Assembly (NCBI GenBank): GCA_030704615.1
Contig: CM060731.1
Coordinates: 43,648,001 to 43,712,000, forward strand
Direction of reading: 5' to 3'
Length of the DNA: 64,000 nucleotides
Origin: Takakia lepidozioides
Lineage: Eukaryota; Plantae; Bryophyta
Position 1 is the stretch's first letter. The number at the start of each line of letters is the position of its first letter. Position numbers and translations under genes: made by a program. Positions 1 through 49,245 of the stretch are shown here, one piece after another. The notes under the pieces were generated by a model. That model was not told where the DNA came from and did no database searches. It saw only the letters and a program-made list of their open reading frames with translations.

Positions 1-493
1 CTTGAGCCCAGACTTGACATTTGTTGTCAAAAGGCTTATTTTGCCGAGTCTGAGGAGCAAGAGAGTCCAAAATTGGATAGATGTCTGTTTCAGAATTGTG
101 TTATTTGAGCTTACCCAAGCTTGAATCACATACATGTTAAGTCTCAGTGTGCAGTGAATATCACATGGACTTCATGTTGGCTTACAGAGACTGGAAGTAC
201 AGTGATCAAGAGATCCGTTGAAATAAAGTCCTAGTTTGTAAGGTGGGGGGGAGGTTGAGCTTGTAGTTACATCCAGTAAGTCTTGTTCAGAAGTTGAATA
301 TACCTGATACCTCCACTCCTATGGGAGCACTAGAAATGGAAGGGAAGTGTGGTGGGACAGCATACGGGGAACATCTGGCAGTGGTTGCTGGACAAAATGG
401 TCTTGCTGCCAGTATCACATATGGAGCAGGTTGGAGAGAGAAGAAGAGAGGTGGCAAGGTAGAGCTGATGAATTGTTGTTGATTGTTGTTCAG

Positions 494-3400
494 GAGGTTC
501 TGGAAGCCCTGCGAGCACGGTTTAATACTGCGAAGGAAGAAGTCAATTCCGAGCTTGCTGTATTTGCCGGGGATTTGATCGAGATTCTTGAAAAAAACTC
601 GGATGAGGCCCCTGATTGGCAAGAGAGGACAGAAGATCTACTGGTGTTGGCCCGTGAATGTGCACTCATGGGTCCCCAGGAGTTCCGAAAGCGATGTGAA
701 GGTATTGTCCAAGAACTAGATGACAAACGACAAGAGCTTCCCATGGGAGTGCTCAAGCAGTTGCACACACGGATGCTTTTCATCCTCACGCGCTGCACAC
801 GGCTGCTGCAGTTTCAGAAAGAGAATGGCTTAGATGAGGATGGGCCCCTTCACAGGCTCCACCAGCGTGCAAAAGTGGGTCCCCAGTTTGAGAGGCATTC
901 CAACTCTCTGGCCAACCAAAAAGGGAAATCAGTGGTGGAGATCGAGCCTGTGAAGGAAAGGAAATCCAGCTCGCCACCCCATGTTCATTCCGAGGATGCA
1001 GTCTCTATAGGCCCTGGGTGGAGAGGCAAAGATGAGGCCACAACATCAGCTGATGTTGTGCAGACGAGCAAAGAGGAAATGAAAGAATTGCCCAGCAAGC
1101 AAGATACGCAGGAGTCCATAAATCCAGTTAACTCTCTTGTCGCTGATCGGCTGGCATCCTGGAAAAAGTTCACATCTTCGTCCGAAGGTTGGGAAAGACA
1201 GTCCAGTAACCAGGACTTGATCCAGAGTGAAGCAGATATCAAGGCCAAAGTTCACAAAACAGAAGGCTTGCATTCAGACCTAGAGGATAGGAGGGCAGTG
1301 GCCGGTCCATCAAAAGACACAGGACCTCCAACGTCGTTGAAGCGGCGTCAGAGAGTCTCATGGGGTAATTGGGGTGACCAGCCAGGTGCTTTGGATGACA
1401 ATCTCCCAGTGATTTGTAGGATATGCGAAGAAGAGGTTCCCACATTGCATCTTGAAGAGCATTCTCGCGTTTGTGCATTTGCTGATAGGTGTGACCACAA
1501 GGCACTTAGCATTGATGAACGTCTCCGACGGCTGGCTGAAGTGCTTGAAAAGATGCTGGAATCCTACACTCCCAAGAGCTCTTTGATGGCTGCAATGGGG
1601 AGCCCCGACACAGCCAAGACATCTAGCTCTAACAATGGCGGTGAAAGCTCGGATGGTGGCCTATCAGAGAAGTTTGGCGGAGCTTCTGAGAAGCCTCTTG
1701 TCACTGAGAAGTTTGGAGGCGAATTGCTTCGTCGGGGCTCTGAGGAGATGCTAGAGGACTTGCATGAGATCGATACCATGGCTAGTATGGTTGATGAGCC
1801 AAGGATCAATCCCATAACTTGTAAAACACGGTTTGGGCCTAGGCCTGATCAGTTTATGGCTCCAGCGTCGTCATCTGCCGGTAGTGTGCTGGCACCAGCA
1901 TCCTCTGCAGGCAGCATAACTCCTCGTTCTCCCCTTGCCACTCCAAGGACCAGTCAGATTGACCTCCTTTTGGCTGAGCGAAGCAGCTTTGGAGAGGCAG
2001 AAGATCTTGTACAGGTCCTTTTCTCTCCCTGGCACTTCAAAGTTTCGTCGTCTCTCTATAATCGTCTTTCTCCTTCCTTTTAGTCTTCTGAGTTTTCTTT
2101 GAGGCTGTAACTTGGCTTTTTGTGGAAGCCTTCCAAGCTACAGGAAACCTGCCCAGCAGGAGCTAGCATTCTAAGTCAACAGGTGTGGTGTACATGTTTG
2201 CAATCAATGGTACTCCGTCTCTTGACTGTATGTAAAACTTTTGCTAAAGTTGCAAGACTTGTTGAGGAGGTTTCATCAAATTGTTTTGTACTTTTACCAG
2301 CCCATATTTCCATCCTTTTAGCTCCACGTTTTTGTCATAGCATGCTGCTGAGAAGGTGAAAGGAGGTGTACTGAATTGCATTGTCAGACTATGGTTGTGT
2401 ATCAGGATAAGATCTGGTTCAAATACTATTTTCTATTTGTTGAACCAAAATTAAAACACGTAGACATAGACGTCTTGCAGATAAACGAGTTGGCAGACAT
2501 TGCCCGGTGTATTGCAAACACAAATGCAGGCGATGAAGGAGCGCCCGAGTACATGATATCTTGCATGCAGGACTTACAGGATGTACTTCAGCACAATAAA
2601 GTTGAGGCATTAACTGTGGATACTTTCGGAAAAAGAATTGACAAACTCTGCAGGTGAGATTCTTAGCTAGTTGGAATGATGAATAGGTCAAGAAAGGCAA
2701 CATACCTTTTTGGCCTGAGTGGGTGATGTAGTGATCATGCTTTCACTCTATTGCTCCAAGGATGAAGACACAATATGTTGGAGGTTCTTAGAGAAAACTC
2801 AAATCCATGTATCAAAGTTGAGGTGATTGGGAAGGGAAGCAGCAAGATATATTTGGTTTCTTTTTCCTGCACTTGCTGTCAGCAGTCATCCTTGATGTAT
2901 GTCTTCGTGCTCATCTAGTTAAAAGACCTTTCGTTTGGGGTGTTCATCAGTTGAGCATTGCTAAAAGGCCCCAGGCAAAGTGCTTGCGTGTGCCAGCAGC
3001 AATTCAGCTGGTGGGCACCCCATTTTTTCATTTCTGGAAACAGGGTTTGGCCTTGAGTCATCTAAAACAGCAGGCGTTGTAACTGTCATTTAGAGATTCA
3101 GGACAGCAACATGTGAAAGAAATGGATAAAAGGAGGTTGAGAGACTGAGACTTTGTAGGTCACATCTATAATCTCATCGTTTGTTAATCGTACTATCATT
3201 ATGGGCTTTCTGCAGGGAAAAACTCCAGCAGGTTTGTGATACTTCGGATGCCAATGTGGACACATCAAGCAGTGCAGCTGAGGAAGACACTCCAGTAGAG
3301 GATGATGTGTTCCATAGTCAGAAGTCAACACCTGTGCACCCAACATATAAGGACCGAACCTCTATTGATGATTTTGAGATCATCAAGCCAATCAGCCGTG

Positions 3401-6400: not shown

Positions 6401-9400
6401 TTGAAGAAAAATGGATATTATTTATAGATGTCTCACCGCTGGAGATGGTGGCTCACATTGGGGTCTCCCTCTATTGTTCTCCTACCTCCTCTCCTTGATA
6501 TCTCTGGTCCTTCCAACCTGGTAGTAGGCTTTACACAACAAGGTTAAAGCAGCTTTTAGGTCTAGTGGGTGCATCTCTTATCCAGATTTGGGGACTGCAT
6601 AATGCTGGTTGTGATGTGTGATAGGGATAGAATGTGCCTTTGTAACAGGGGTTCCCCTCTTTTGAACTTCAAGTGTTCCTGGACTCACATTATGTGTGTT
6701 TTTATTTTTCCACCTGTTTGGTTTGCTCCAGTTTTTTGTGAAGTGCAAATCTATCTGGTGTCTTGCTAAACTGTTAGCGTTTTTCCAGGTGCTGGCATTG
6801 GAGTATTTGCATTCGTTGGGGGTAGTCCACCGTGATGTGAAGCCCGATAACCTTCTGATTGCCCATGATGGACACATTAAGGTAGTAGTGGGAGGACTTC
6901 ACTTGAATGGAATAGCAGTTGGCACTCTATGGCTATATGAACTCTAGATAGATGAGATAGCACTGCTGTAGCTTGTTGGATTGTGGCTGCTGCATTTCCT
7001 CTTAACTTTCAGTAGTTTGTTCTTACTGTCTTAGGCTGTGCAAAGGGACTCCAGAGGTGGATGAAAGGTGAGGGTGGGGATACAAGAGACTCTGACCTGT
7101 CAAGTGGCTTTGTTGCAGCTAACGGATTTTGGCCTTTCAAGAGTAGGCCTCATCAATAGTACAGACGATTTGTCAGGCCCTGCTGTAAGTGGAACCATGC
7201 TGATGAAAGAAATTGCCAAGAACCACCAAGCATCTCCAGAGCCACTGCAGCAGAGAGAGAGGCGTCAGCAACGGCCAGCTGTTGGCACTCCCGATTATCT
7301 AGCCCCTGAGATTCTCTTGGGAACCTCTCATGGTATGTGCTCCTGCAGCTTATTTTGGGGTGTATTCAATGTAGCAATTTAGCAGGGGCTTAGAACACCC
7401 AGGCTACTGCAGCTTTGTTTAATGTCATTGTGTCTCTGCCTTTGTCCATCTCATTTCTCATTCTTTCTGTCTCACGTAAGGGGATTGTCCTCAGGTCCTG
7501 CTGCAGATTGGTGGTCCACGGGTGTCATTCTTTTTGAGTGCCTTACGGGGATTCCTCCCTTCAATGCTGAGCATCCCCAGGTATGTCTGGATTCTCTCAT
7601 ATATCCTAATGTTCTTCTCTTTCTCTTAGGTTCAGGCCTTGCCTGTATCCCAGGCTGGTCCTGTGATTGAAAATAAAACTCTGAAACTTTAGGTTGTTTA
7701 GTACTACCCTGGCCTACTTCGATCCCTGATTCTTGACGAAATTTTTTCACTTTCCATTTAGGTAGTTCCTTTACAAGACCTACTGGGCTGGCCATTTAGC
7801 CTCAGCAACCAATCTCATAGCAGTGAAACTTGCCTAACGTTACGTGTTTCTGGATTGGTGGTGGTCCAGCTTATTTTTAACAACATTCTCAACCGTAACA
7901 TTCCATGGCCCCGAGTTCCTGAGGACATGTCATATGATGCCCAGGATTTGATTGACAGGTATTTTAATGTCTGTCTTTCTTTTCAAATGAAGAAGTCTCC
8001 AGTCTCTACAATCCATTCTTTTGTGAAATTAAGCAGATGTGAAAAGATTGCAGAGCATGCATGATTTCCTCAGGGGATGTTGAACACAAAAATTGCTATT
8101 GCTCCTGTGGCTTGGTAACCACAGTGAAGGAGGTTGTTTGCATCTTAAACCCTGGCAAAAGTAAGAAGCATCTTACACTTTGGTGTTCTTTCCAGACTCT
8201 TGACTGAGGATCCCAATGAGCGCCTCGGAGCTAAGGGTGCTGCCGAGGTAAGCCTGATTTTTCAGTTGGAATAAGAAGCCATGGCTAGTAATTTCTTGCA
8301 GACAGTTTTGTGGTATGAGTGAGATCCGTTGCCTCTACAACATCAGGCTATCTTCAACTTCAGGCAAAGGTTTCATGTTAGGGGTATACAGATCACAGTT
8401 CACAGTGCAATTGTTCGTCATGGTTTATTTTGCAGGTGAAAGCGCATCCGTTTTTCAAAAACATCAACTGGGATACACTAGCCAGGCAAAAGGTGAAAGT
8501 TGTTTGTTTGTTTCTGTTTCACTGTCCCTTCCTCCAGAATTGGTTCCACTCATTCTACAGTTCTCATTACCTAGGAGAAAACTTTGTGTTGTGTGTCAAA
8601 GCGAGAACAAAATGCTTGCTTGGCTTGATGATGAGTCAAATGTGGCAGGCGGCTTTCATCCCAAGCCCTGACAGTGCGGATGATACAAGCTACTTCACCT
8701 CACGCCATACATGGAACTCCAGTGAGGGCCGATTCATCTCCGACCCTTGCTATGGTGACTCAAGTGATTATGGAAGTAGCAGTAGTGGAAGTACAAGCTC
8801 CTCGGATATTAGGCCTGAAGAAGGAGTAAGTGTGCTTCATATTTTCTGATTTCCAAGCCGTTTCATGCAGGAAGAAATTGCTGTCTTGCAGTGATGAAAT
8901 CTCTGTCGTGTTCGGTAGTTACCATGATGGGTATGCTGTTTGGTATTGGTGTAAGGAGCAGCCTCAGTTGGATGTAACCCATACTCTGCAAGTCCATGTT
9001 ACCTTGATGGAAGATGGAGATTTGCTTCTACTTGTTCACTCATGTACATGCACTAGGCTTCTCTTCACTAGGCTTTGAGCAGGCAGACAACTAGTTTTTG
9101 AATCAGAGGGTTTGAATAGATTGAGGAACCAACTGTTTGGTAAAGGGAAATCTAGCACGACTGGGAAGAGGCCTGAGGGCAAGCGTAAGGAAGCATAGTG
9201 GTATTTGTGAAGCAAATTGCACGAACTGTTTGATGACCCTGGCCCTTTAACAGGGAGACGAGTGTCGCGACATGGCTGAGTTCGAGACTACGCCCTCTGT
9301 CAAATACTCCTTCAGTAACTTCTCATTCAAGGTGTGTTCTGCTTCTTGTCTCTTGTTGCTAGGCATATGGATGCATGCTTATCTCTACTGTTTGCACATG

Positions 9401-11446: not shown

Positions 11447-14280
11447 TCAAAACCAGGAGAAAGACATGATCCATGAGACCTCCATATGTTGGCTTACCTG
11501 AAGTCCTTCAGCCGGTGTACAACCTCTTCCTGGTCCTGGAATCTTGGGGCATGGGTGGGTAATTTCCCGAGTAGCCATGCCTCTCCAAAAAGTCTTTGTA
11601 GCGCGCAAGTGACTTTCCATTCCCATCATCAACAGCAGTCATAACTGGCTCCCCAACAGGGTACTGAAGACCCCCCTCCATCATGGCAGTGAGGTCCAAA
11701 ATCTTTCCTTTTGTAGCTCTCACCAAGGCAAGAAGGTGTTGCTGGAGAAATCTGTTGTCATCCATCAGTTCAAGAATAGTTTGCCACTCTGTGGAGATAA
11801 GGGCAGGTAGACTGGGCAGTGGACTTCGACCAGCGGATGTTCTCTAAGCCATTGAAGGGGAGGTCAGACCTGGGGGAGTTTGTGAAGATGATAGGATGGA
11901 AGAAGGGGAGTCATGACCAGTCATCAAGTTGTTCAGGCCACCTTTACATGTCCCCATGAGGGAACCGCAGAACTTTGCAATCAGCCCATCCTCCACTTGG
12001 GGGTGCAACATCTTCAGAACCTTCACCTGGTGTGCGCACATATTTTCTTTCTGGGCCCAATGACAATCACAACATGCCCATTTAGAATCCAGATTGTGGA
12101 TAGTATATGTCATACCCAAATGGCGGTGGCATTCAACTGTTGCAATGCCTCCGGGTGTATGAGGCAGATGCACATTGGCATTTGGAATGTCCTTGGCAAG
12201 CAAAATTGAAGTGCAAACAAATCCCTCCTGCCGCTTGTTTCGGATGAACCCATATGCCTTTGCATGTGACATGTACCAGTAATGGGTTAGCACATCACCT
12301 GTCAGTTCAGAGATGAGCCAATCCACCCGCCTACTACCGAGGACGCTTTTGGTGCTCTTCAATTACGCTTTCAGGTTCCCATGGTATGCTTCTATGGCAG
12401 CATTAGTGTCTTGAGAGGCATGAGGTATATTGCGGGATCCTTTCATCCACATTTTGGCTTTTGGAAGCCACTCTGTCTCCATGTAGGTGCAGAATTCTGT
12501 CTCAGAAGGGTACTTCTCCCGCAGGTCCAGAATTTTGAATACGGCCCATGCTTCACCTGCATCCCCAGAGGTCTCCTTTCTATCGTACATGATCTGTGCC
12601 AGGTCTTGTAAGATAGCCGCTCGCAATACTGGGTCTTTCACCTTTGCAACTGCATTCTTCTGCCAGGCTCGGCAAACATGCCACAAGCACAAGAAAACAG
12701 CACAATCCCCCCAAACAGATCTGTTATCTTATCAGGTAGGTAAACTGAAATTCATGTGTAACCAAGACATCATGGTAGGCATATTGCCTGAGTTCATGGA
12801 TGTACCTAATGGCAGCAATTTCAGCATCAGCGTCATCCACAATAAATGCATTGGGACGCCAGTCTACTTGCCGACTTGTCATTTGTTTGTTTAGTGCCTC
12901 CATCCAAGGCGTCAGATCGATGGTTTTGCACCTTGCAGTGATAATGTAAGCCACTGGAATACCATTCAGCCAGTCGTCGAATACCATCATGGTATATAAT
13001 GGGTACTGCAACAACAATCATGTGTAACTGAAGTGACTTGAAAGGAAATGGTTGCAAAACAGAGTACTTCACACGAAGAACGTAATTTGTCATGCTTTCA
13101 AGAAATTCGGGTTGACAATCTGACGAACCTTCTTTTCATTCGTTCCAAAGGTTGCATCACAAGCAACTATGCGACGATGGCCGTGTTTGAGCATCTATTT
13201 TCTCTGCCAATCAGTTTGTATGCCAAGCACAAATGGATCAAGTTTTCTGTCATTCAACGTCCAAGCAAGGTGATTAGACTCTTCCTGGTAGTAGAAAACG
13301 CTTCCTGCGTTTTCATGCACCCACATTCGGACACTTTGTGCATCATTGGAATGCTTTTTGAATGTTTCTTCATCGCACTTGTTGGCAATATTTCGGATGT
13401 CATTTGAAAGAAGGAAGGTGTCACGAGTAACCTCGAACCCCCCATCCATGATTTCCCTCACCCTCTGCGTGTGCTTGGCCATTATCTTGTTGATGCTTAG
13501 TCCGAGACGGAGGTTGTGTAACACCCATGATTTCATCTCATCATAATAGACCAGCTCTGCAATATCAGGGTCCACATAGCATTGCTTCACTACAAACCTG
13601 CACATGCATCCCCTCTTGATGCCTTCCCCCGATTTTGTTTGTGTGGTCCTCATGTGTTTTGGCTTTGCTTCAGTGGAAGCGGCCGTGGCTCTTGGCTTCC
13701 TCCCCTTCTTCTTTGACCTTCACTCGGCGTTTCTTGTGTGCCATTGCAAGGGTAACCTCCAAGAGGGAACTAGTTCTGTCCTGTGGACCATATGAGCAGT
13801 GATACCTACAATAACAAAAAAAACAATCCGTTACTATGATACCAAGGGGATTCAGGCACTCGGACATTCATGGAAATCATTCAGCAGCCCTTGCAACACA
13901 TGACCTGCAGCCCAATGTACCTTGTTGTAGTCCTGGCACTGTTGCTGCGAGGAGCTAAGAGAGACCCCTCCGGATGGCATCTTTGCTGATGCCTGCTGAA
14001 AGTGCATGGGCCATCTGAACGGGAAGACTCCCCTGTAATGAAATCAGCAACTCGATTCCAGGGAATGTAGGTGACTTCGACAAAGTTTTGGCTAGGAGGC
14101 TTGCATGCCATTTGAAACGCCACTGCAGTACACGATGGTTAAAAGCACCTACACTGGGCATTTGAACTTGGTTTCGAAGCAGCAAAACAAGATGGGATGC
14201 AATGTTTTCTTCATTCTCGGCAACAGACATATCGTGGCGCAATTTAGGGACCTGAGGCACGACTGGTACTGGCTGCACGT
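11447..14280 (-). pseudogene. Mutator-like (MULE) DDE transposase with C-terminal SWIM finger, spliced, inactivated
   Basis: IPWNRVADFITGE; YHCSYGPQD; KRGCMCRFVVK; PFVLGIQTDWQ; catalytic D in CDATFGTN, D in FIVDDADAE, CLWH motif, E in TNAAIEAYHGNLK; SWIM CDCHWAQKENMCAHQ. In-frame stops at about 13195 and 12363, and an apparent deletion after ELVYY. Confidence 0.88.
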
Positions 14281-14605
14281 TGTGCTTTCGTGGTCAAAAC
14301 AGGGTGAGAGGACCATGAAAGGAAGGTGACGATTGGAGGGTGCCTCTCATTACACATACTTCCTGGTCTCATCCATCCGTACCTACATACATCCATCCTA
14401 AATCCTAGAAGTAGACCCAATCCATAAAATAATACTAAATTTCAAATTTGAATTTTGAAATTTGAACATGTACAACCTTGTGTATACATGCATATGTGAG
14501 GGCTTCACGCCTATGGTCATCATGTGACTTTCGTGATGGTCATCATGTTACTTTCGTGACCATCATGTATGTGTCATCTGCCATGTATGGATCCATGTTT
14601 TCGAC

Positions 14606-14893
14606 TCACGATGTGTCCCGCGCTCGATGTTGGATTGTGGTGACAGGTGTCATGTGCCACAGAGTTCTTGTGGTGTGGTGACGGCCGGCGGGCGGGGGGC
14701 GGGCGGGGGGATGGGGGTTTGGGGGGCGGGGGGCGTGAGGGGTGGGCTGGGGGGGGGGCGAGGGGGCGTCGGGGCGCAGCGACGCGAGCCGCGCAGGAGC
14801 CGGCGAAGGGGGTGCGGCTGGGTGGCGGGGGTGCCACGCAGGACCAGGACGAAGGGGTCGCATTAAACTCCCGGGCCTTTTCTAATGTGCGCC
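14606..14893. repeat. MULE terminal repeat copy A (G-rich, ends ...ctaatgtgcgcc)
   Basis: Homologous to 39121-39376 in the same orientation. The last ~43 bp (gaaggggtcgcattaaactcccgggccttttctaatgtgcgcc) are identical and similarity stops abruptly there. Confidence 0.85.
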
Positions 14894-17417
14894 TGTCTGG
14901 AGCAGTGCCGCCTGCTCTTACTAACTACTAGAACCTGTGTTTGTGCAGCGATCACCAAACCACCATCAACGGGGCTCGCAAAAATGAAAAATGAAACATG
15001 AGCTCGCAAGCCGGTTGACGACAGACAACCGTGTGGAGCTGAAGAAAAGTAAGCAGTACAACAGGCAGCTATTTGACAAGGTTGTGGCAGCCTCACTACT
15101 TCCATTCCCCGCAGCCTGTGTGGGTCCTTTGGAGGATCAACCACGTAATCTAGTTCGCCTCTCTAACACACTGCGCGCACAAGGTGTTCCACTCCAGCAA
15201 CAATTGTACAAGGGAGTCTTGAGAGAAAGAACTTCACCGTTGGGCCGAGGAATGCTGCAACAGATGAGCTTGCTGCTCCAGATGACTGCTTGGGTCGAAA
15301 TTATTTTCGTCTTCAATGCTAATAATGAGTGCAGGGTACCTAGTGACTCACGAAAGAGGGTCTACTTGCATCAATTCATCTGGGTTAATGTCATATGATT
15401 CACGTAGCCTACAGGATGTGTAAATGTGATTTGATGCCGCTTGTGATTTGCTGTTGTAAGTTCAATGTAACAAAAGGAAGTTGCTTCACAGTCTTCAAAT
15501 CAGCCAATCAACTGCAAGGTATGGAGAGATTTCATAAACTGATATCTCTTCATAAGACAATGCATCATCAGGCCTTCCTTTTCTCAACATGTTCAAACAT
15601 ACTACAACTAAAGACCTCGAAGACTGTTGAGAGAGAGGTTCTGGGGCAGGACAAAGAGGGCACGAAGCACTTGGATCACCACCAGGGATGCCCACAGAAG
15701 AGTAGACTATTGACTGCCGCCACTTGTTCAAGACGTTTTAGTCCAATTAGTTTCAGTCCAAAGACGTCCAGGAGAGGCCCGCACCTTCAACTCTGACAAT
15801 TTCATGGCCAACTTGCAAGGAGATGAACCAAAGTTCACTGTAGATCGATCATCCATGTTTTCCTAGGCACAAACACCAAAACTGCTTATATTGAGCTTCA
15901 GTGTGTGAATCCTTGACCAACAGGGAGGGGCCAGCACTTCACCGATTCTACACAAAACCAATCAAAGCTTACTTGCATTCTTGTGATTTAATGTGAGGTT
16001 CAAACCTCCCTGGATCTTCAGTGAATTTTCCTTGGAATGCGGAACTTGGAGGCCACGTCCTGAGGATGGGAAGAAGTCCGCGAGGGGCAGCAATGTGAGC
16101 AGATGTCCTGTTCAGATCTACTATTATTGCCTCCAACAGTCCACCCAATTTTTCCTCCAATCCCGATTGCATGTAGGCTAGCATGAAATCTTTCCCTGAT
16201 ATCGACATCCCGTCCCCAAGCTTCACTAACCGCAAGCCCAGGGAGCTGAAATCCTGCCCATCCTGCTTTTCTGTAGTTCTCTAATATGCTGGTCTGTGCC
16301 CACGTAAGCAATGGTGAATCCGTTTTTTAGCAACCTGTAGGATGGGAACATAGCTTAGGATCCAGGAACCCGGACACGGCAGCATGAGAAGCAAATCCTC
16401 ATCCAAGTGCCCAACCAGATCAGATGCCATGTAGGGAATTCCAAAAAGGCCTTGATGTGAAATGCAGCGCAATTCACTTGATCAGATGCCAATTCAATTG
16501 AATTGCGATGCCAATTCAATTGATCTAACCCTAATTTGCAATTCAATTGAATTGTAATCTATAATTTTTAACGCAGTTTTGTATATAATATATATAATAT
16601 ATTATCATGTATATGTATCGTATACACATATACATACAAGAGTATAAGCTGAATATACTTGTTGGCCCGTCTATTCCTGCTGCCCGTCCATCCTTTGCTT
16701 GTGGTAAGGCCTAAGTCACGACATGAGTCGCGTAGCCTAAAGGAGAGATATATAGAGAGAGGAGAGCGAGAGCGAGGGAAAGGGAGAGAGAAATGAAGTG
16801 ATGAAGGGTTTTTAGGGCAGAGGTGCCCTAAAAGTGAAAGGATCAAATCAGTTGGAGGACGAGAAGTAACGAGAGAAGAATGCAAACAAGTTTAGGGTTG
16901 AGCGGTGGTGGAGCGGTGGTGGCGCTATGTATGATGGAAGCCTTCTTGGATCACCAAATGACAAGATCTGCCCATGAGTAAGCACATTCCCATATTGGCA
17001 TGAGTTCCCCCAATCATTGATAAAGATATCATTTTAGCTAAAGCTGTAGTTCTTGTGTACGTGCAGGTGACTCATGAGTTTTGAGGAGAGAACTTTAGGG
17101 GTAGTAGAGTGGGTTACCAAACGCTCCTCAACACACACACTGAAAGAAAGAGCTTGATCACATGGTTTGTCTTCAACCTGCCCACACTGTGTACTGTGGT
17201 TTGCTAATACATTTTAGGATAGAGTAGTTGTTGTTTCAAAGTACATTTGGTTCATCTACTTGATAGCCTATGTGAACTTTAGTGACGTAAGTCCTATGGG
17301 GAATGTGTGAGTGGATGCAGTGACTATAGAATTAACAGCAAATAATTACAACAAGGGCAAGGTCGAAGGCATTGGCACTGGGGCTATTAAAGCAGAGATA
17401 AGACAGATCATGTGAGC

Positions 17418-18967
17418 ATGGAAAACAACCATTTGGATGGTGACAAAGTAGTGGATGATTTAGTACTTTATGTGGAAGCAATGTTGAATGAGGGTGCCAC
17501 AATGAAATCAATCGCCACTGCCCTTTCTTTTGATGATGTACGACCATTGAGAAGATTGCTATCAGAAGTCCAAGGGTCTCCTTTCAAAGTTCATCATCAA
17601 TTGAGTGTCCAACGCTTGTGTGAAAAGATTCAAGAGTTACTTCCTATTGAAGAGAATGGGACAAATTGGCGAATGAGAACAGTGCAATCTGCCTTAAGGA
17701 GGTCAAATTGGCTGATTCCTCGAAGGAAGGTGGGGGAAGCTTTGAAAATCATCTCACCCTACCATTATGAGCGTAGGAGAAGGGCACAGGCAATTCGGAG
17801 GACTCAGTATAATGTGACAATGCCTATGGCTCTATGGCACATTGACTGTAAGTATTTTATCTCATGCATCTTAAATGTTCTTTGAAGATGCACATGCAAG
17901 ACGTTTTCTTGCATTACATATCGCAAAAATTGTAGGCAAACTAAAACATGTGTGCAATTCGTGGTGCAGCTTATGACAAATTGGTTATGTTTGGACTTCG
18001 AGTACATGCTGGCATTGATGGGGCCTCTCATTTTGTTTTATGGGCGAACTTTGCAAGAAACAAGAAAGAAAAAACCATTTTCAAATGATATCACGATGCA
18101 GTTTCCAAGTTTGGAGCACCTTTACGAATTCGATCTGATTTTGCAGTAGAAAACAACACATTGAAGCCACACGTTCTGAAACACCCAATCCGTACTTGAC
18201 TGGGTCTTCTACACACAATCAGGTTAGTATTCTATACAATTCTATCTTGCATATCAACTTTACGTTTCTGTCATATTTTTGGTTCATCTTTATTAATCAT
18301 TGAGTGTGTAATGTTGTGCATATTCCTAATACTTTGTGTGGTGTAATCACCACGTTAGAGGATTGAACACTTTTGGCGGCATCTATGGGAGAAGGTAATG
18401 TTCTACTACAAAAATTGCTTCCAAGCAATGGTCAATGATGGATTATTGGATATGGACGATCCGTGGCAACGAGAATCTTTTATTGACATATATATGCCCA
18501 TACTACAAGAAGCTGTTGATGAATACGTGAAGATTTCGAATGGACATCGAGTTCGCACGATTAATGAAAACGGTCGATATCGTCGATCACATGTTCCTGC
18601 TCGTTTCTTTCGTGAGTATGAACGTTTGCATGGGTAAGCTCATGGTTTTCTCTTGTTTGTACTTTCATTGTTAAGCTACAATTTACATTGGAATGTTATT
18701 CTAATGTGGTGATGTGTTTGATCATGTAGATGGACCAGCCACCTTATTGATGACCCACGATTCAGGGAAGACCCCCGACACATTGGTAACCAAGACTTGG
18801 GGCCTCGTGGGAATCAAAGGTGGCGATGTGCAGGTGGTTTGCATGACCTTCCTACCAAAGGAGCTGAACTCATTCCTGACATGGTTCGTGTCCGTGCACA
18901 AGCTTATGAAATTGAAAGGTTGGGAAGGATTCGATCTCTTGTTTTCATCTCCACTACTACATGTCTC
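17418..18967 (+). pseudogene. IS3EU-like integrase-core transposase, 4 exons, one nonsense codon and a small lesion
   Basis: Exons ~17418-17847, 17970-18222, 18359-18633, ~18730-18967. Translation: ...IRRTQYNVTMPMALWHID|SYDKLVMFGLRVHAGIDGASHFVLW...FGAPLRIRSDFAVEN...LTGSSTHNQ|RIEHFWRHLW...GLLDMDD...NGHRVR. D-D-E = WHID, RSD, RIE. Premature TGA at 18086-18088. Confidence 0.85.
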
Positions 18968-19437
18968 GGTATGTGGTTTGGCAACGCATGAACATAGATA
19001 TTTTGATCAATTGGACCTCATTGGTAATACCGTGTTAAGTAGGGAAGCTCTCCAACTTTTAATTACACAAACTCTGTATGTAATTGTGATTAACTGAATA
19101 AGTGGGACAATCACATTCAAAGATAATTATTTTATGTCATGTACTTTGAGGATTTCTGTTAAATAAATGTCATCATCATATCCATTGTCCATATTGAACC
19201 ATACACCCTAAACATCAAACCATACTACTTGGGGGCAGGGCCTGGGTTGTACGATCTTTGGAGGGTTGTGAAATTGTTGGGTTTCATTGGGAAGTGCACA
19301 GCGTGAGGCTCATGAGGCCGCCTTTTATCTCCAACAATCTTTGTCTGCCCCACATATGAGACAATGATGACCAACTTGCCTCATTTTCAAGAACCCTCTA
19401 TTCATAATCTAAGAATTTTGCATACAGTAATAAAAAT

Positions 19438-19577
19438 CCTAAGTCAGACAAGATGGAGAGATTGAAGTAGAACCTTGATGTCTTTGACTTTGAGTTGACC
19501 GATGATGATATCAAGCCCTTGACAAAAGCCTGCGCACCAACGACCCTGAGAAATTTTTGTGTATCAATCTCTTCTGA
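19438..19577 (+). pseudogene. Captured C-terminal exon fragment of an aldo-keto reductase (sorbitol-/mannose-6-phosphate reductase type)
   Basis: PKSDKMERLK*NLDVFDFELTDDDIK-(frameshift)-LDKSLRTNDPEKFLCINLF* matches the AKR IPKS...RLKEN..VFDFEL motif and the RTN.P.KFWGI.L tail of plant S6PDH/M6PR-like enzymes. Confidence 0.78.
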
Positions 19578-20259
19578 GGATGAGTTTGACTGGTGGGTGT
19601 TGCTTACAATCTAAATATGTTAGCATGTTTCATCTGCACCTTGAGACACTAACCAATTTCATACTGCCAAGCCCTTATAGTGCCAATATATGGCTATGTA
19701 CATATACCAAACATGATACCACTGTAAGAGTATCAACGTCTAAGAGTTGATATATTAAACTCTCTATCGAAACACACAGCCCAATTGCAACATGATACCT
19801 TTGTAAGGGTATCGAAACAAGATTATTGAGATAATTCTCGAAATGAACATGTCTTTTGTTTTCTCTGGGGTTGTGTCATGGGGGCCAGATACTAGTGCCA
19901 GGGGAGTACATGATGATGAAGGGGAAGCCATTCATCAATTGTGAGGTTTGAAATTGTCTGTTTCTTTCAGAGCTAGCCATATTTTTTGCCAGTGAATCAG
20001 AGGAAGCTGAAGCACTTCTGAGTAAGCCATCTGTCTCCCAAAGGGTCCCCCAAAAAATGAGATGGAGCTAGCCTGGCATGCACATCAAACCCATTTAGCT
20101 CACAAGCAGTTTAAGGAGGTTTGCATAAACATTTGGCCAAGGTTTGAGGGCTTTGCCTATTCCAACAACAGTATTTACCAAAGCACATAACGTGCTTGTA
20201 ATAACACTCGGGCTGCATGTGGGGTTCATGGGATGCTGAATGGAAGTTGAGGAATTTGA

Positions 20260-20394
20260 AAGGCTGGAGTGGGAATCGAGAGCATGAATGCTGAGTTCTG
20301 CAATAGTGATGAGATTATGGTTGTAGTGCAACGTTGTAGTGGGTTTGTTATTGGCAGCCCAACACTTGCAAGCCACATGCCCACTCCTATGAAG
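20260..20394 (+). pseudogene. Captured fragment of a flavodiiron protein (FLVA/Flv1-like flavodoxin domain)
   Basis: KAGVGIESMNAEFCNSDEIMVVVQRCSGFVIGSPTLASHMPTPMK followed by a GT donor at 20395. It resembles the Flv motif TKAGVAVESINCE...GFIIGSPTLGGHAPT. Confidence 0.8.
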
Positions 20395-20576
20395 GTGTGA
20401 CTGGTGATCTAGTGACCAGTCACTTAGTCAAACCAGCGATACGCAGGCAGTGGGTAGAGTGGTGGATGAGCAACACATGGAGAGGTGTGCACATGGAAGA
20501 TCAATGTCAAGTCCATATCAGCCCTATGCCAAGTTATATTGCTTCCCCTTGTGTTCAATACCTCTACAGAGCGTGA

Positions 20577-22277
20577 CTACAAACGTTGAAGGGCCAAGCA
20601 GAAATTCTTGTCATTACCACCATGGTGGTTTGAGTTTATTTCACTGTATAACTTGTCCCAGTATAATTTTTTCTGAGACCTAACAAGCTGATTGATATCT
20701 TTATGGAGCTGGTAGTACCTCGCCCACAATTCTCTGTTGGTTTCCAAATTGCAGCACTGTTTATAGAGGGCTCCTCTCTCAGCTATCTTGAGTTTAATCT
20801 CATTAGTCCACCAACTAACTGCTCTACCGCAGACAATTAGTTTCCTCCCAATGATCTTGTCATCCACGGAGGAAACGAAACTCTCCCAAGAGTCCACTGC
20901 TCTTTCGACTTCATTTATTGCGTTAACAGAGCGTGACTGAAGTTCTTGGAGCGATTGGACAAAATGAGGGAGAGCCTCTTGCAAGGCCTAGACGTACTCA
21001 GCCTTAACCTCCTCATTGTGGAATTTTTCTATGCGCCACTTCCGAATCGAACGTTTCACAGATCTCTTGGTGGTAGGAAAACACCTTTTGATGTCAGTCC
21101 AAACCAGCAAGTGGTCAGAGGTACCAATATCAGTTCTGTCGATCAACACATCGGCACACTGGGGGAACAAAATTTTGTCCATTATGATATAGTCCACAAT
21201 GGAACGTTCCCCAGTTTGGGGTTTCTCACGAGTCCACTGCACTTGGTCACCTCTTGTCCTATTATTCAAGGTCAAAAGCTGAAGCTTCTAGACAGTTAAT
21301 TAACCGTCTGCCATTAGAATTCAGCTCGTCCTCACCAAAAGGTCCAATGATATCGTCCTGATGGATCCCTTTGCCCACCCGGGCATTGAAGTCCCCCAAT
21401 AGTACCACCTGACCTTTGGCAAGGAACGAAGCACAGTCCAGCTTCAAAACTTGTGAGGCCTTGTCTGCATCAGCACACAGGGTCCCCTCTGTGGGCATGT
21501 AAACACAACGGACAAAGAGGTCCAGCAGAGAGTACTCATGCCGCCCTTCAAATTCAGTTTTAGCCAGATACTATGCTCGTACCTCAAACCCTTGTTGATA
21601 ATTTCACAATTGTCAAACAAGAAATCACGGACGAACTTATTTGAGATTGAATTGATGCGGGACTCTATTAGAAGCACTTTTGGTCATTGCAACCTTCAAC
21701 GTACCCCTGTTATCAAGTCTCGAGATGGTACCATTAACCATGAAATCCAAGCCTAAGGTAGAGCATGTAGTTTTAAAGGACACATCGTCCATCCTGGGAT
21801 TCACCCCAAAAACTACATATGAAGCCCTAGATTTGGCATAAGTAACCAATTCCCAGGGATCACCCTGAGGAGTGTTGATGTTGATAGGAGCTAAATTTTT
21901 GATTGTTTTCGCAGGCCATAAGTTGAAGCACAGGAACCAACCCGAGCCCAAGTGCCGAGTATGCTAGACAGAGCATACGACTGCCCAAATTTGGGCGGAG
22001 GGGCCCCCAAGCGGTAGGAGTCCGCTTGTTACCATTCAGAGATCACACTCCAGGGAGTTGCAGGGAATGGCCCGTGTAGGCATATTCTAAAGAGGGAAAG
22101 GCCCCAAGCTTTCCAACTAAATCCAATGCACTACCTTACCTGAAGCAAAACGCTTAAGGTCGAAACAAACAAGGACACGAGGTCAGAAGGCCGACATTTA
22201 GTGACAGAGACATTAATGTACTCCCGTTTCAAGTCCACCCAATGTCAATAGGCTTCCTAGAGGACAGGGAGAAACAC
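20577..22277 (-). mobile_element. Nested LINE 5' portion with AP-endonuclease domain (RTE/RTE-X-like), 3'-truncated, frameshifted
   Basis: VVLLGDFNARVG, GPFGEDELNSNGRRLINCL, ERSIVDYII, IGTSDHLLVW, AVSWWTNEIKLKIAER in ORFs 21262-21498, 20988-21275 and 20577-20984. Confidence 0.82.

Positions 22278-22278
<1 letters not shown>

Positions 22279-22321
<43 letters not shown>
22279..22321. repeat. Perfect (GA)n/(CT)n microsatellite at the 5' side of the nested LINE
   Basis: About 21 uninterrupted GA units. Confidence 0.95.
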
Positions 22322-22324
<3 letters not shown>

Positions 22325-22740
22325 GAAATGAAATAGGGTTGGTTGTTTGTTTCTCCCTTGGCACCTAAGGTGATATTAGTTGTCCTCCGCATACATATCC
22401 AGCACACCAGAAAAGAGAAGAAAGCTCTTTGAACTTACTTGAAGCATCTTGTATTTCCAAGGGTGCAGCATCCTTCATACTCAGGATGGACACGGTTGCC
22501 TTACCAAATGTGTCAGCTCTGCTGCTGCCTCTTCCTTGGCCTCTTCCTGTCCACCCAACCATGACACGTACCATGAAAAACTCACTTGACATTTCTATCC
22601 CACTCTTCTTATTGAGTAAACCAGAAACAATAGACAATCATGTAGCCAAGTGGTACGCGATGAACAACTGTAGAATCTAACAAGCGAGGACTGGGATAAA
22701 AACAGAGATAAGAATGCGTACGTTGCCAATCCCTCTGTAG

Positions 22741-22962
22741 GTATACTAAACAGGGCAACTACCTCATAACGATACCTCAACCTGCATATAGACTGATTTG
22801 ACCAGGTTTCTTTGTAAGTCAGGCGCTATACCTCTGGTGGTATACTAAACAGGGCTACTGTCTCATGACGATACCTCCGCATAAATATAGATTAATTTGG
22901 CCAACTTTTCTTTACCTCTCTAGATATATCAAACAGGGCTACAACCTAATGACAATACCTCT
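22741..22962. repeat. Three degenerate subterminal direct repeats inside the right end of the IS3EU element
   Basis: tatactaaacagggcaactacctcataacgatacctc (22742), tatactaaacagggctactgtctcatgacgatacctc (22841), tatatcaaacagggctacaacctaatgacaatacctc (22925). Confidence 0.75.
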
Positions 22963-23515
22963 ACTAATATATATGTGTAGTATATATCTCTCCTTTAGGC
23001 TACGCGACTCATGTCGTGACTTAGGCCTTACCACAAGCAAAGGATGGAGGGGCAGCAGGAATAGACGGGCCAGCATGTATATTCAGCTTATACTCTTGTA
23101 TGTATATGTGTATACGATACATATACATATACATATACATGATATTATATTATATATATTATATACAAAACTGCGTTAAAAATTATAGATTACAATTCAA
23201 TTGAATTGCAAATTAGGGTTAGTTCAATTGAATTGGCATCTGATCAAGTGAATTGCGCTGCATTTCACATCAAGGCCTTTTTGGAATTCCCTAGCCATGC
23301 TATCCTAGAAAGAAGCTAGCTGTTTATGTGAGGACTAATACTTATGTAATTGTTAATATGTATAGGATTCACTCGTCCAACTTGAAGACGCTACTAATCT
23401 AAAATGTGAGGCAATACATTTAATATACGTGGCGCCAGCTCAGTGCAGTGTCTTCATCATAGCGGTCATGCATCTTCATTCATATCTGCGTAAGGTAGAT
23501 CTGCAGCATCACATG

Positions 23516-23934: not shown

Positions 23935-24149
23935 ATCACATGGCCGCCACCACCGTTTGCCTTAGTAACTATAGCTTCGTTATAGTTAGTGATGAGTGTC
24001 TGACGAAAACTATAAATGTACTCACCCGTCTGGTGTTCATGTCAGTCGATCAATGCAATTCTTTCACAGATTGCACCTAGCTCACTGAGGCCACAAACAT
24101 TGGAGGGCTGGAGCGAGAGAGAATCCTGGTGAAGTCGAGATTATTCAGA

Positions 24150-25842
24150 ATGGAAGTGAAGGTCCTATCAAAAACCATGGTGGTTCCCACGCCACGGCCT
24201 CACGAGAGCCGGGAGTTGCAGCGGCTCCCACTTACCAGCTTCGATGTCCGCATGATTCAGTATCCTCCCCTCAGATTCGTGCTCCTGTTCGAGGCAAGCG
24301 CTCAAGAAGACCTCATTGTGGAGCAGTTCAATGAAAGACTAAGGGAGAGTCTCTCAAGAGCGCTGGCAGACTACTAGCCATCATCCACCCTGCTGTAGCA
24401 CCGACAACATGGTGGCTACAGCACCATGTATGCAATTGTTAAAGTCTGTCATGCAGCTTTGACGGTAGAGGCTTCTGGAAACTAGATAACGACGTTGGGA
24501 GACCTTGGCATTTCAAGCAGGCCGGTTCGTGCAAGACGAAGACGGGCAGACAGCCGTGGACTGTAACGACGCAGGGGTGGAGTTTGTTGAGGCTTCAGCT
24601 CCCATCACTGTACGGGAGCTAAGTGACTACAACATGGCTGACATGTATCCACACTTTGCCCAACCGATCCCCTTCAATCGTGAGGACTTTGGTACCTGGC
24701 ATACCCGCGGCCCTCTTTTTGGCGCCCAGGTCAGCAAGCTTCATATATCTCTGTGTCATTATATTTCAGGTGTGAAGGTGACGATCACATGTCAGGTGTA
24801 GCAATAGTAGCTTTTTTGAGGCCAGATACGCCCCAATTCGAACGAGTGTCTGACTGACATCGATTCCCTTTGAAACACGCAGATCACTCATCTCAAGTGT
24901 GGCGGCTATGTAGTTGGTTATGTTTACTTCCATGGAATCGTAGATGGAATGATGCTCCGGCAATTTATCAAGTCATGGGCAGAGGTCGCCAGTGGGGAAC
25001 CAATCTCCCTTCTTCCCGATTTTAGCTCGCGAGCGAACGTAATCAAATTGGCATCGGAGTCAGACAACTCGGATTGTCCAACAGAAAATGCTCTTCCGGC
25101 TTGTATTAAGAGATTACCGTTGTCGGTTAATCCTAAGTTTCTTTCCGTGGAGGATTCAAAGGATACCCATGCGACTGCCCTGGACTCTTTGCACATTTTG
25201 TTTGATCTACCGATGCAAAAGAAGCTCAAAGAGAAAGCAGTGGAGGGTTCACCACATGGGCCCACGTTCCGTACTTATATCATGATCTCTGCACATGTCT
25301 GGAGGGCCCTTACCCGGGCTCGATTGCTTGCAGATACGGAGGAAACTCGATACTTCAATAACGTCGATTGCAGGAAACGTTGGCCAGAGCTCCCTCAGAA
25401 TTATTTCGGAAATGCAATTCTTGACGCGGTGGCAGTCACCACCGCGAAAGAGCTTCTGGGAAATGGAATCTCATATGCTGCAAACCTGCTGCACAAGGCG
25501 ATCGATTTCACCGCTCAACACATCAAATCTGTCTTGACCGCAATGGAGAAAGAAAAAAAGGAATGGATCTTTGTGGGTGATTTCCGACCTTTCGCTGATG
25601 TGAGCACAGCTGTTTCAACTCGATTCCCAAGTCATTTTGACTTCGGATTGGGCCCGGCTTTTGCCAATAGGGCCGCTATGGCCAAGACGCAGGTTCCTTC
25701 TCCGAAGATCGCCTTTAGAGCAAAGCACAGCGATGGTAGTATACAGATAGAGTTCAACCTGCCCCACGATGCCGCAACGAGACTGCAGGAAGACCCAGAC
25801 TTCATGTCTTGTATATCATCTCTCACCGCTGTCGCGCTTTGA
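24150..25842 (+). pseudogene. BAHD acyltransferase interrupted by a 133 bp insertion in exon 1
   Basis: LRESLSRALADY [TAG, insertion 24375-24507] AFQAGRF...VDCNDAGVEFVEA...PLFGAQ, conserved Q-intron 24730-24882, then HGIVDG (HxxxD), NYFGNA and DFGLG (DFGWG variant). Stop at 25840-25842. Confidence 0.85.
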
Positions 25843-47526: not shown

Positions 47527-49245
47527 TTTACTTTATTGAAAAAGGGAAAGATACAAGCATAGCATCATGAGGAAAAATAACCTCAATATGAAAGTGCCTT
47601 AGAGGTTGATGTAGGAAGCCACTGCTTCGTAACCAAAAGGCAGCAGTCTGCAGAGAAGAGTATGATAAGGTCTGGTAATGAGAGAAGAGAAGATAAAGCT
47701 TAGACTCAAGAGTCATGTCTATCTAAGAAAAGGTGTCAAAGGACCGTTGCACAATCAATTTGCCCTTCCTAACTGATTTTCTATGCCTCCAATTGACCTC
47801 CTGGTCCTCCCGATCCAGCGGGGTATGCATCGCACTAAGCGAACTGCCAGCCTGATGGGATGGTGTCGCTCCAGAGAACTCGGGAATCAGATTGCCCGGT
47901 GCAGATTTTGCCCCCTTTGCCCCAGGAGTTGTCAAACTCATCGAGAAGTTGAGTCCTTCTTCTCGGGCCACATCTGCATAGAGCTTCCCCAATAACCCGC
48001 CAAGCCTTCCTAGCATCAGACATTAAATCTGAAACCATAAACAATATAGCCCTAGCGTTGCTCCATTTGTTAGCAAAAACAAAACCACATCTGGCTTTCC
48101 AGATTTTCCATAGCATCTGAGCTATGAGGGAAGCCCATACTGGGCAAGGTGACCTCTTGAAAATTAAGAAGTAACACTGAGGTATCATCCCGAGGGAGAG
48201 GGTTCCAGGAGGAGTAGAAATTCCGAACCAAACACCAGGAAGCACGGGCAGCGTGACAGTACAGTAGGCAATGCTCCATGGTTTCAGACACGTTCATGTT
48301 GCAGAGCTTACAAATTGAGCTAACATCAGAGACAGAGTAAGAGACTGGGAGAATTTTGTTAACCATCTTCCATAGAAAGCCCGACAGCTTTGCAGCCCGG
48401 TCTTTCCTCCAAATATCCTTCCAAATGCACTTCCAAGATTTGGGATGGCCAGAGAAATGAGCCCATTTCTTGGTAAGCTTGAGATCCACTGGGATATGGA
48501 AGTTGAGTAAAGAGTACCATTTCTTGACCGTGTAAGAGAAGAAAGGCGAGTGCTTCTTATCTTGCCAAATCCATTCACCAGGGTCAAACTGTAGCAAGGT
48601 TAGTGGAGCCAACAAAAACCAGAGGAAGTGAGAGCTTTGGTGGCAGCCATTGGCCGCTGAGGGGCTGATCTTGCTAGTGTTCATACAAATGACTCTGATG
48701 GCGTAGAGGGCAACTTCCTCGCAATGAGAAATTCCAGGAGAGTGTAAAAAACCAGAAGGGTGGACTTTAAACAACCAGCCCCGAAGGGAAGAGCCATCCC
48801 GGGACATAGCAAAGAAAGCTTTTTTGGGAATGATACCCTCCAAACCCCACCAAGTGTTGAGGGCCTTCCTGTTCCTGGGATGGGAGGTCAGAGAAACCCA
48901 GCGGTCAGGGAAATCAGCAGTCACCATCCCCCAACCAGCAGCAGCCCGCCTGCTGGTCATATCAGAGGTGACAAGCTCTCTAGGCAAAAGAGTACCATCG
49001 CTCCAAAGGTGAGTAAAGTGAGAAACCCCCGCGGCTTCCCAAAATGCCCAGCAAGGTGAACACTTAACGAGAACTTCAGAATCTCTATTGTAATTTCCAA
49101 AGAGGGGTTGTCTGAGGGCCTCCTCAGACGTCGTGGGCTGAAGTTGAGCAAGAGAGATACGCATAGCAGTCCAGGCCCTCCATATGGATCTCCACGCACA
49201 GGAACCACATAGAGGTTTGGCATTCGAGTTTCCACCTTGCACCAT
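47527..49245 (-). mobile_element. 5'-truncated L1-clade LINE (ORF2 C-terminus with zf-RVT)
   Basis: 391 aa ORF with FSYTVKKWYSLL, WKCIWKDIW, FLWKMVNKILPV, CKLCNMNVSETMEHCLLYC, then MLWKIWKARCGFVF. AATAAA on the minus strand near 47531-47537. Confidence 0.85.

Follow-up and report, generated by a model that had tools for sequence, protein, structure and literature searches.

Results

The locus analysed here raises the question of whether a DNA transposon has taken up pieces of unrelated genes alongside its own transposase and, if so, in what form the pieces arrived and by what route. The first-pass annotation had placed fragments of an aldo-keto reductase (AKR) and of a flavodiiron protein (FLV) inside an element of the IS3EU type and had called this Pack-type capture. 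The window referred to throughout is the whole 64-kb stretch of DNA that was analysed, and the coordinates of the features within it are collected in Table 1.

Table 1. Positions of the element, its termini and the sequences that it contains (coordinates of the window).
Feature	Position	Strand	Basis or remark
TIR element, whole (6,862 bp)	16432-23293		Inverted ends and target-site duplication
Left target-site duplication, GCCATG	16426-16431	.	Read directly; same as 23294-23299
Left terminal inverted repeat	16432-16754	+	Begins TA; repeated CAATTCAATTGAATTG-type palindromic motifs
Right terminal inverted repeat	22981-23293	-	Ends TA
Right target-site duplication, GCCATG	23294-23299	.	
Broken GingerRoot/IS3EU DDE transposase gene, several exons	17391-19097	+	Pfam rva_4 (PF24764)
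Transposase exon pieces	17391-17847, 17969-18222, 18361-18634; C-terminal ORF 18705-19097	+	
Probable AKR C-terminal (terminal-exon) fragment	19435-19611	+	PDB 3wg6 and signature
25-nt motif in two copies, both palindromic (GATAC..GTATC)	19710-19813	+	Spacer between AKR and FLV
Candidate FLV exon N-1 remnant	19971-20014	+	Flanks ttcag (acceptor-like) and GTAAG-like (donor)
Complete 148-nt flavodiiron (FLVA-like) exon N	20247-20394	+	Equivalent to Marchantia MpFLV1 S447-Q496
52-nt GT...CAG spacer	20395-20446	+	Palindrome with 9-bp stem, GTGACTGGT / ACCAGTCAC
Start (18 nt) of FLV exon N+3 (AVGRVV)	20447-20464	+	Directly after CAG acceptor
LINE-like fragment	20466-21963	-	Apurinic-type endonuclease remnants and downstream ORF; antisense to transposase

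A single, old transposon of the GingerRoot/IS3EU type

The limits of the element were clear from its ends. The terminal inverted repeats (TIRs) are 323 bp long. Left and right are 88.7% identical in an alignment of 335 columns, with 100% complementarity across the outermost 71 nt. The element starts at its 5′ side with TAGGGAATTCC and finishes with GGAATTCCCTA, the reverse complement of the start, which gives TA..TA termini. It is flanked on both sides by GCCATG, a perfect 6-bp target-site duplication (TSD). Each TIR also contains two to three copies of the palindromic motif CAATTCAATTGAATTG, placed after GATGC (16484-16560 and 23187-23241), and these palindromes are candidate transposase-binding sites.

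Between the TIRs lie the remains of a transposase gene, three exon pieces of which match the Pfam integrase core profile rva_4 collinearly (profile positions 17-52, 56-79 and 104-173; best E = 2.2e-11), and the N-terminal ORF gave a weak match to an IS481 transposase (E = 0.0066). The catalytic D, D and E are found within WHID, RIRSD and RIEHFW, and inspection by eye showed agreement of WHID, RIRSD, GSSTHNQ and RIEHFWRHLWEKV with the published DDE peptide of Sl-GR-005; no HHCC zinc finger was seen by eye in the N-terminal ORF. This copy of the transposase is defective: an in-frame TGA (18086-18088) separates profile positions 52 and 56, and the frame has probably shifted by 1 nt near 18180-18190, where the published peptide runs uninterrupted.

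GingerRoot elements are characterised by TA..TA termini and a 6-bp TSD (Cerbin, Wai, VanBuren and Jiang, 2019; PMC6839031), complete IS3EU families have TA..TA termini and TSDs that are usually 6 bp long (Kojima, 2023; PMC10045372), and the two groups form one clade with 99% bootstrap (PMC10045372). Because the TA..TA termini, the 6-bp TSD and the DDE features of the present element fit these published hallmarks, the earlier assignment to IS3EU was right, and it is borne out by the TIRs, the rva_4 matches and the GingerRoot DDE motifs. Membership of the clade is a matter here of hallmarks and motifs rather than of a tree, and the exons of the transposase, FLV and AKR were each searched singly. 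The interval is a single IS3EU/GingerRoot DNA transposon of a plant genome, old and non-autonomous.

The base composition and decay of the sequence bear on the age of the copy. The cargo, by which we mean the DNA unrelated to the transposase that lies within the element, has an observed/expected CpG ratio of 0.27 with a TpG+CpA excess of 1.44, compared to a CpG ratio of 0.81 for the neighbouring BAHD gene; there are three in-frame stops across the FLV and AKR fragments, and the TIRs have diverged by 11%. The copy is old and dead, and probably methylated.

No further copy of the element was found within the 64-kb window, and a metagenome scan with the 22-nt element terminus returned 0 matches. 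Word-based protein searches with the FLV exon and with the best transposase exon, a method poorly suited to such short fragments, also gave no match. When metagenomes were scanned with a transposase exon, the sole find was a distant GingerRoot-like transposase pseudogene with no TIR or cargo in common with the window (contig L006, positions 7198-8989; JGI contig Ga0116229_10000110). It lies on an AT-rich (34% GC) eukaryotic metagenome contig, has internal stops, keeps its exon pieces in the same order as in the window and is 37-72% identical to the window pieces; clear TIRs were not found around it.

Sequences surrounding the element

The window is DNA of a plant and not of a human, as seen from its BAHD gene, its plant-type LINE with a zf-RVT domain and the presence of flavodiiron sequence. 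The BAHD acyltransferase gene, in three pieces (24129-25842, + strand; Pfam Transferase, E = 1.7e-21), begins approximately 840 bp beyond the element on its right side. A copy with 79% identity and alignable introns is present on Logan contig L007 (run SRR327418), and is either a paralogue or the gene of a related species. Among named relatives, a Sphagnum protein came closest to the BAHD ORF (31% identity), and an exact-sequence look-up of this ORF gave no match.

Further from the element, a 578-codon open frame at 347-2083 (+ strand) had no Pfam match, and contains a motif that resembles the N-terminal part of AGC kinases of the plant IRE/MAST-like kind; the frame probably represents a large host-gene exon. 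On the opposite strand, a run of ORFs at 11844-13653 resembles remnants of a MULE transposase, with a SWIM-like CCDCHW..C.H pattern visible by eye, and gave nothing in Pfam at E ≤ 0.001. A 390-aa ORF at 48070-49245 (- strand) carries a zf-RVT domain (E = 7.4e-7) of the plant LINE type, and is unrelated in sequence to the LINE-like piece of the transposon. Finally, the GC-rich segment at 14574-14931, in which Pro/Arg/Gly-rich open frames overlap on both strands, resembles low-complexity sequence more than it does a gene.

A complete flavodiiron exon bounded by its splice sites

Flavodiiron genes are characteristic of green plants that do not flower. The segment 20260-20397 of the element matched the flavodoxin-like domain of a Synechocystis Flv protein (PDB 6h0d; E = 5.5e-9), and a search of 1.84 billion proteins with the same segment gave 117 matches at E ≤ 1e-3, the best at 5.2e-12. 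The best full-length match was MpFLV1 of Marchantia polymorpha (‘flavodiiron protein A’, FLVA; 61% identity), and the piece is 60-66% identical in amino acids and 71-72% identical in nucleotides to its best relatives in other species. Several of the short matches proved to be single-exon ORFs in which PTP(V/I/M)(Q/K) runs directly into V, that is, into the GT of an intron, at the point where the fragment in the element ends. The flavodiiron identity of the fragment is confirmed.

The limits of the piece were set against two reference exon maps, one for the Marchantia FLV gene (L001) and one for L003, a plant FLV gene from a JGI metagenome contig. The reference exon N is 148 nt long, encodes S447-Q496 and begins at the last base of a Ser codon (phase 2), and the exon in the window is equal to those of both L001 and L003 in length and phase, with an acceptor AG at 20245-20246 and a donor GT at 20395-20396. 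Nucleotide similarity to L003, L004, L005 and L008 (71-72%) ends exactly at both exon edges, and the Logan FLV contigs L008 and L009 have the exon alone in common with the window. The fragment had originally been drawn from 20260 to 20394; its identity and its GT donor stand, and the start has to be moved, as the true start of the exon is 13 nt earlier, at 20247. Two TGA codons interrupt the frame of exon N, one at 20248-20250, where Marchantia has CGA (Arg) and L003 has CGT, and the other at 20257-20259.

The flanks of exon N showed no similarity to the neighbouring FLV exons when compared with L001 and L003. Because AG and GT are present at the conserved junctions and the flanks are unlike the neighbouring exons, the exon came in with intron DNA and not from a cDNA, and on this comparison the FLV piece is an acquisition at the DNA level. 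The proposal of the first-pass annotation that the splice signals point to DNA-level capture is thus upheld by the AG/GT pair at the conserved junctions and by the intron-like flanks.

Plant or algal flavodiiron genes with introns were also seen on metagenome and Logan contigs (L003-L005, L008 and L009), where single exons are annotated as ‘flavorubredoxin’; these contigs are host DNA within microbial data sets.

Remains of the flavodiiron gene downstream and an unproven upstream candidate

A second stretch of FLV sequence was found on the far side of the short spacer that follows exon N. The heptapeptide QAVGRVV, in which the Q is provided by the CAG, matches MpFLV1 (P0004) residues 593-599 at 7 of 7 positions; at the nucleotide level the region of 20447-20464 matches the exon start in L003 at 18 of 21 nt, and AVGRVV is the exact start of exon N+3 in both L001 and L003. 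As a rough estimate, seven residues would agree by chance with some FLV position within several hundred bases, on the correct strand, at a probability of ~1e-3, and the match is in addition collinear and placed at an exon start. FLV homology stops at 20464. In L003 the corresponding interval occupies ~880 bp and includes two exons, N+1 and N+2, that are absent from the window, and we infer that the 52-nt spacer consists of two FLV intron stumps fused by the deletion of these exons. An exon-like piece had been noted at 20450-20575 and left without a name: its beginning can now be assigned to the start of FLV exon N+3 (20447-20464), the idea of a single exon has to be given up, and the remainder belongs to the antisense LINE-like ORF.

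The other exon-like piece left without a name, at 19970-20021, does have splice-like flanks, and was not significantly similar to the FLV exon before it. Its core (19971-20014) was tried as FLV exon N-1 on the strength of these flanks and an LAIFFAS stretch and was set aside as unproven, as the similarity in protein and nucleotide was at background and below that of many random tiles of the window; shuffling gave p = 0.013 and 0.077, in two conflicting registers.

A probable aldo-keto reductase fragment and the adjoining spacer

The reading frame that starts at 19435 encodes NPKSDKMERLK, is interrupted by TAG (19468-19470), continues with NLDVFDFELTDDDIKPL and stays open to 19611; a possible acceptor AG precedes it at 19426-19427. 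The residues from 19471 onward aligned with positions 272-304 of the 307 residues of PDB 3wg6, a conjugated polyketone reductase of Candida, at E = 0.48, and neither Pfam nor NCBIfam gave a match for the 47-residue piece. The 15 residues from 19438 fit a relaxed form of the AKR active-site signature in register with the PDB alignment. This PROSITE signature, [PAIV]-[KR]-[ST]-x4-R-...-[NSL]-...-[LIVMFA], had in its relaxed form one match in the window over six frames, at 19438, with 0.3 expected per shuffled window; the 11-residue upstream piece was judged solely by this pattern match. The fragment is probably derived from an AKR, an identity that is weaker than that of the FLV piece and likewise drawn from sequence resemblance. 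It had earlier been given as 19438-19577; the AKR identity is probable, as stated, and the end was misplaced, since the TGA at 19575-19577 is in another frame and the ORF runs to 19611.

The copies of the 25-nt motif in the spacer that separates the AKR and FLV pieces (19710-19734 and 19789-19813) are 88% identical and 79 bp apart. PDB searches with the other open frames of the cargo gave no matches. A 12-nt direct repeat, GTTTGACTGGTG / GTGTGACTGGTG, occurs just after the AKR coding part (19584-19595) and again after FLV exon N (20395-20406); it could be microhomology from a joining event or could be due to chance, such 12-mers being numerous in this region.

A LINE-like piece in inverse orientation

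The sequence beyond the FLV remains is a chain of ORFs on the opposite strand, for which the only Pfam match was to Exo_endo_phos_2 at E = 0.022, and in which the motifs LLGDFNARVG and SDHLLVW can be recognised by eye. Neither a reverse transcriptase domain nor a poly(A) was found in the fragment, searches of the PDB with its ORFs returned nothing useful, and no paralogue of them was present within the window. The ORF is broken off inside its coding frame at the point where the FLV piece adjoins it (~20466), and no run of A or T was found at this joint. We have modest confidence, judging from the Pfam match and the protein motifs, that the fragment is LINE-like.

Origin of the foreign DNA

The AKR and FLV pieces lie between the TIRs, 3′ of the transposase and in its orientation, exactly as first annotated, and non-transposon gene fragments, the FLV firm and the AKR weaker, sit inside the TSD-bounded body of the element. 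The explanation that we consider likely as a whole is that the two pieces were captured from host genes, their attribution being by comparison with genes of other species. The region 3′ of the dead transposase would then be a patchwork of foreign DNA in one old GingerRoot copy, assembled from three sources. The first would be the terminal coding part of an AKR gene. The second would be at least ~220 bp of an FLVA-type gene, made up of a complete exon bordered by intron on both sides together with the first 18 nt of a later exon, the two exons between exon N and exon N+3 having been deleted. The third would be the inverted LINE-like fragment, truncated on its 3′ side. All of these would have been copied in as genomic DNA and not as cDNA, and all would now be decaying pseudogene fragments. 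The likeliest route would be a switch of template while the element was being repaired or replicated.

The timing of these events matters for what they should be called. The cargo may have been present before the last transposition, and so have moved with the element, or may have entered afterwards; the label ‘Pack-type’ implies cargo that has been mobilised, and here the cargo is known from one copy. If the foreign DNA were filler introduced by double-strand-break repair after the last transposition, ‘Pack-type capture’ would be the wrong term. Such an origin would be in keeping with three unrelated sources of which one is inverted, with the internal deletion of the FLV piece and the palindrome at its joint, with a transposase that is dead and with the finding of no second copy having the same cargo. 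However, mobilised Pack-type elements show the same features, and the missing second copies reflect the databases searched and not the host genome. Furthermore, the cargo of the GingerRoots of Selaginella lepidophylla comes from just ten genes over 22 elements, which indicates that cargo was amplified by transposition there. Filler DNA is a possible but somewhat unlikely source of the patchwork.

Capture by the GingerRoot element itself also has to be set against delivery of the AKR and FLV pieces by a nested element, whether a Helitron, a MULE or a LINE acting by transduction. The LINE-like fragment adjoins the FLV piece, a hairpin follows directly on the FLV exon and MULE remnants are present elsewhere in the window (11844-13653), all of which could be taken to favour such a carrier. 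However, the interval 19098-20464 is without a bracketing pair of inverted repeats or a flanking direct repeat. A hairpin followed by CTRR-T was absent from both strands of 19000-22300, and the sole strong palindrome (20397-20422) runs into TTAG and not into the CTRR of a Helitron 3′ end. Nor does the LINE-like piece have the geometry of 3′ or 5′ transduction, being antisense, cut within its ORF and free of poly(A). A separately bounded nested element had been named at the outset as the finding that would speak against capture, and the search for one turned up no TIR/TSD pair, Helitron terminus or LINE-transduction end; we consider delivery of this kind very improbable. That the similarities are due to chance and no gene fragments exist at all is scarcely credible, for although the AKR match taken by itself (E = 0.48 in the PDB, no Pfam or NCBIfam match) and the non-significant candidate for exon N-1 might be read in this way, the AKR signature is in register with the PDB alignment, and for FLV such a reading is already refuted by an exon that scores 5.2e-12 among 1.84 billion proteins and has edges at conserved splice junctions.

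Discussion

The first-pass annotation had supposed that the uptake of pieces of genes was a process undescribed in integrase-family TIR elements. This is wrong, because Cerbin et al. (2019; PMC6839031) reported the carriage of gene fragments by GingerRoots, which belong to the same lineage as IS3EU (PMC10045372). In S. lepidophylla, 22 of 77 intact GingerRoots contained gene fragments, derived from ten genes; the fragments range from 84 to 1,654 bp, pieces of two genes occur together in several elements, and the presence of introns as well as exons led the authors to infer acquisition at the DNA level (PMC6839031). The DDE domain was kept in only 6 of the 22 fragment-bearing elements, and the authors describe the mechanism of acquisition as unknown (PMC6839031).

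The element described here resembles those of S. lepidophylla in its 6-bp, GC-rich TSD, its TA..TA termini, its possession of TIRs and its integrase-related DDE domain with GSSTHNQ and IE.FWRHL, and also in size (6.9 kb, compared to 3.9-12.9 kb there). Its cargo is similar in kind, consisting of fragments rather than whole genes, from more than one gene and with intron sequence. It differs in the length of its TIRs (323 bp, against 100-150 bp in S. lepidophylla), in the inclusion of a LINE-like piece in the patchwork and in the state of the fragments, which look more decayed here, with stops, whereas those of S. lepidophylla retain 79-98% identity to their parents. It is also unlike most of the S. 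lepidophylla elements in that it has kept a recognisable, though broken, DDE domain (6 of 22 there). With the IS3EU superfamily (Repbase; PMC10045372) it shares the TA..TA termini, the 6-bp TSD and a DDD/E transposase related to IS3/IS481; the superfamily has, however, been described mostly from animals and fungi, and the placement of the present element inside the clade is by these hallmarks.

Comparison with the better known capturing elements gives a similar picture of partial likeness. As in Pack-MULE, CACTA, hAT and Helitron capture, host fragments from multiple loci are found inside a mobile element, as copies of genomic DNA and mostly as pseudogenes. Unlike these, the transposase here is integrase-like, and not of the MuDR, CACTA, hAT or Rep/Hel type; the TSD is 6 bp, whereas those of the other groups are 9-10 bp, 3 bp, 8 bp or absent; and the cargo lies beside the remnant of the transposase, not in its place. 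Styx of Zymoseptoria, which is derived from IS3EU, likewise has extra coding sequences added to an IS3EU-type body (PMC10853768), but these are whole co-opted coding sequences in an active element, whereas the present additions are pieces of housekeeping genes and are dead.

Novelty may lie in the host, in the family with its 323-bp TIRs and in the cargo of this copy. Should the host be a species other than S. lepidophylla, this could conceivably be the first documented fragment-capturing GingerRoot/IS3EU element outside that species, a suggestion that we put forward tentatively. On its own the element changes nothing that is known, as the fragments are dead and the phenomenon has been published. 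It does add a further worked case of an integrase-type DNA transposon that carries gene fragments, and one in which the joints can be read at base level: a whole exon with both splice sites, a deletion that would have fused two introns, and an abutting LINE piece in inverse orientation. Joints of this kind are the raw material for working out the mechanism of acquisition. Were the host another species than S. lepidophylla, the palindrome-bearing 52-nt GT..AG spacer and the abrupt joint between FLV and LINE at 20464/20465 would be footprints of DNA pick-up, and one possibility is that they arose by template switching in an IS3/IS481-like copy-out step and not by gap repair after excision. A case of that kind would also suggest that acquiring pieces of genes is a property which integrase-like TIR transposons have in general.
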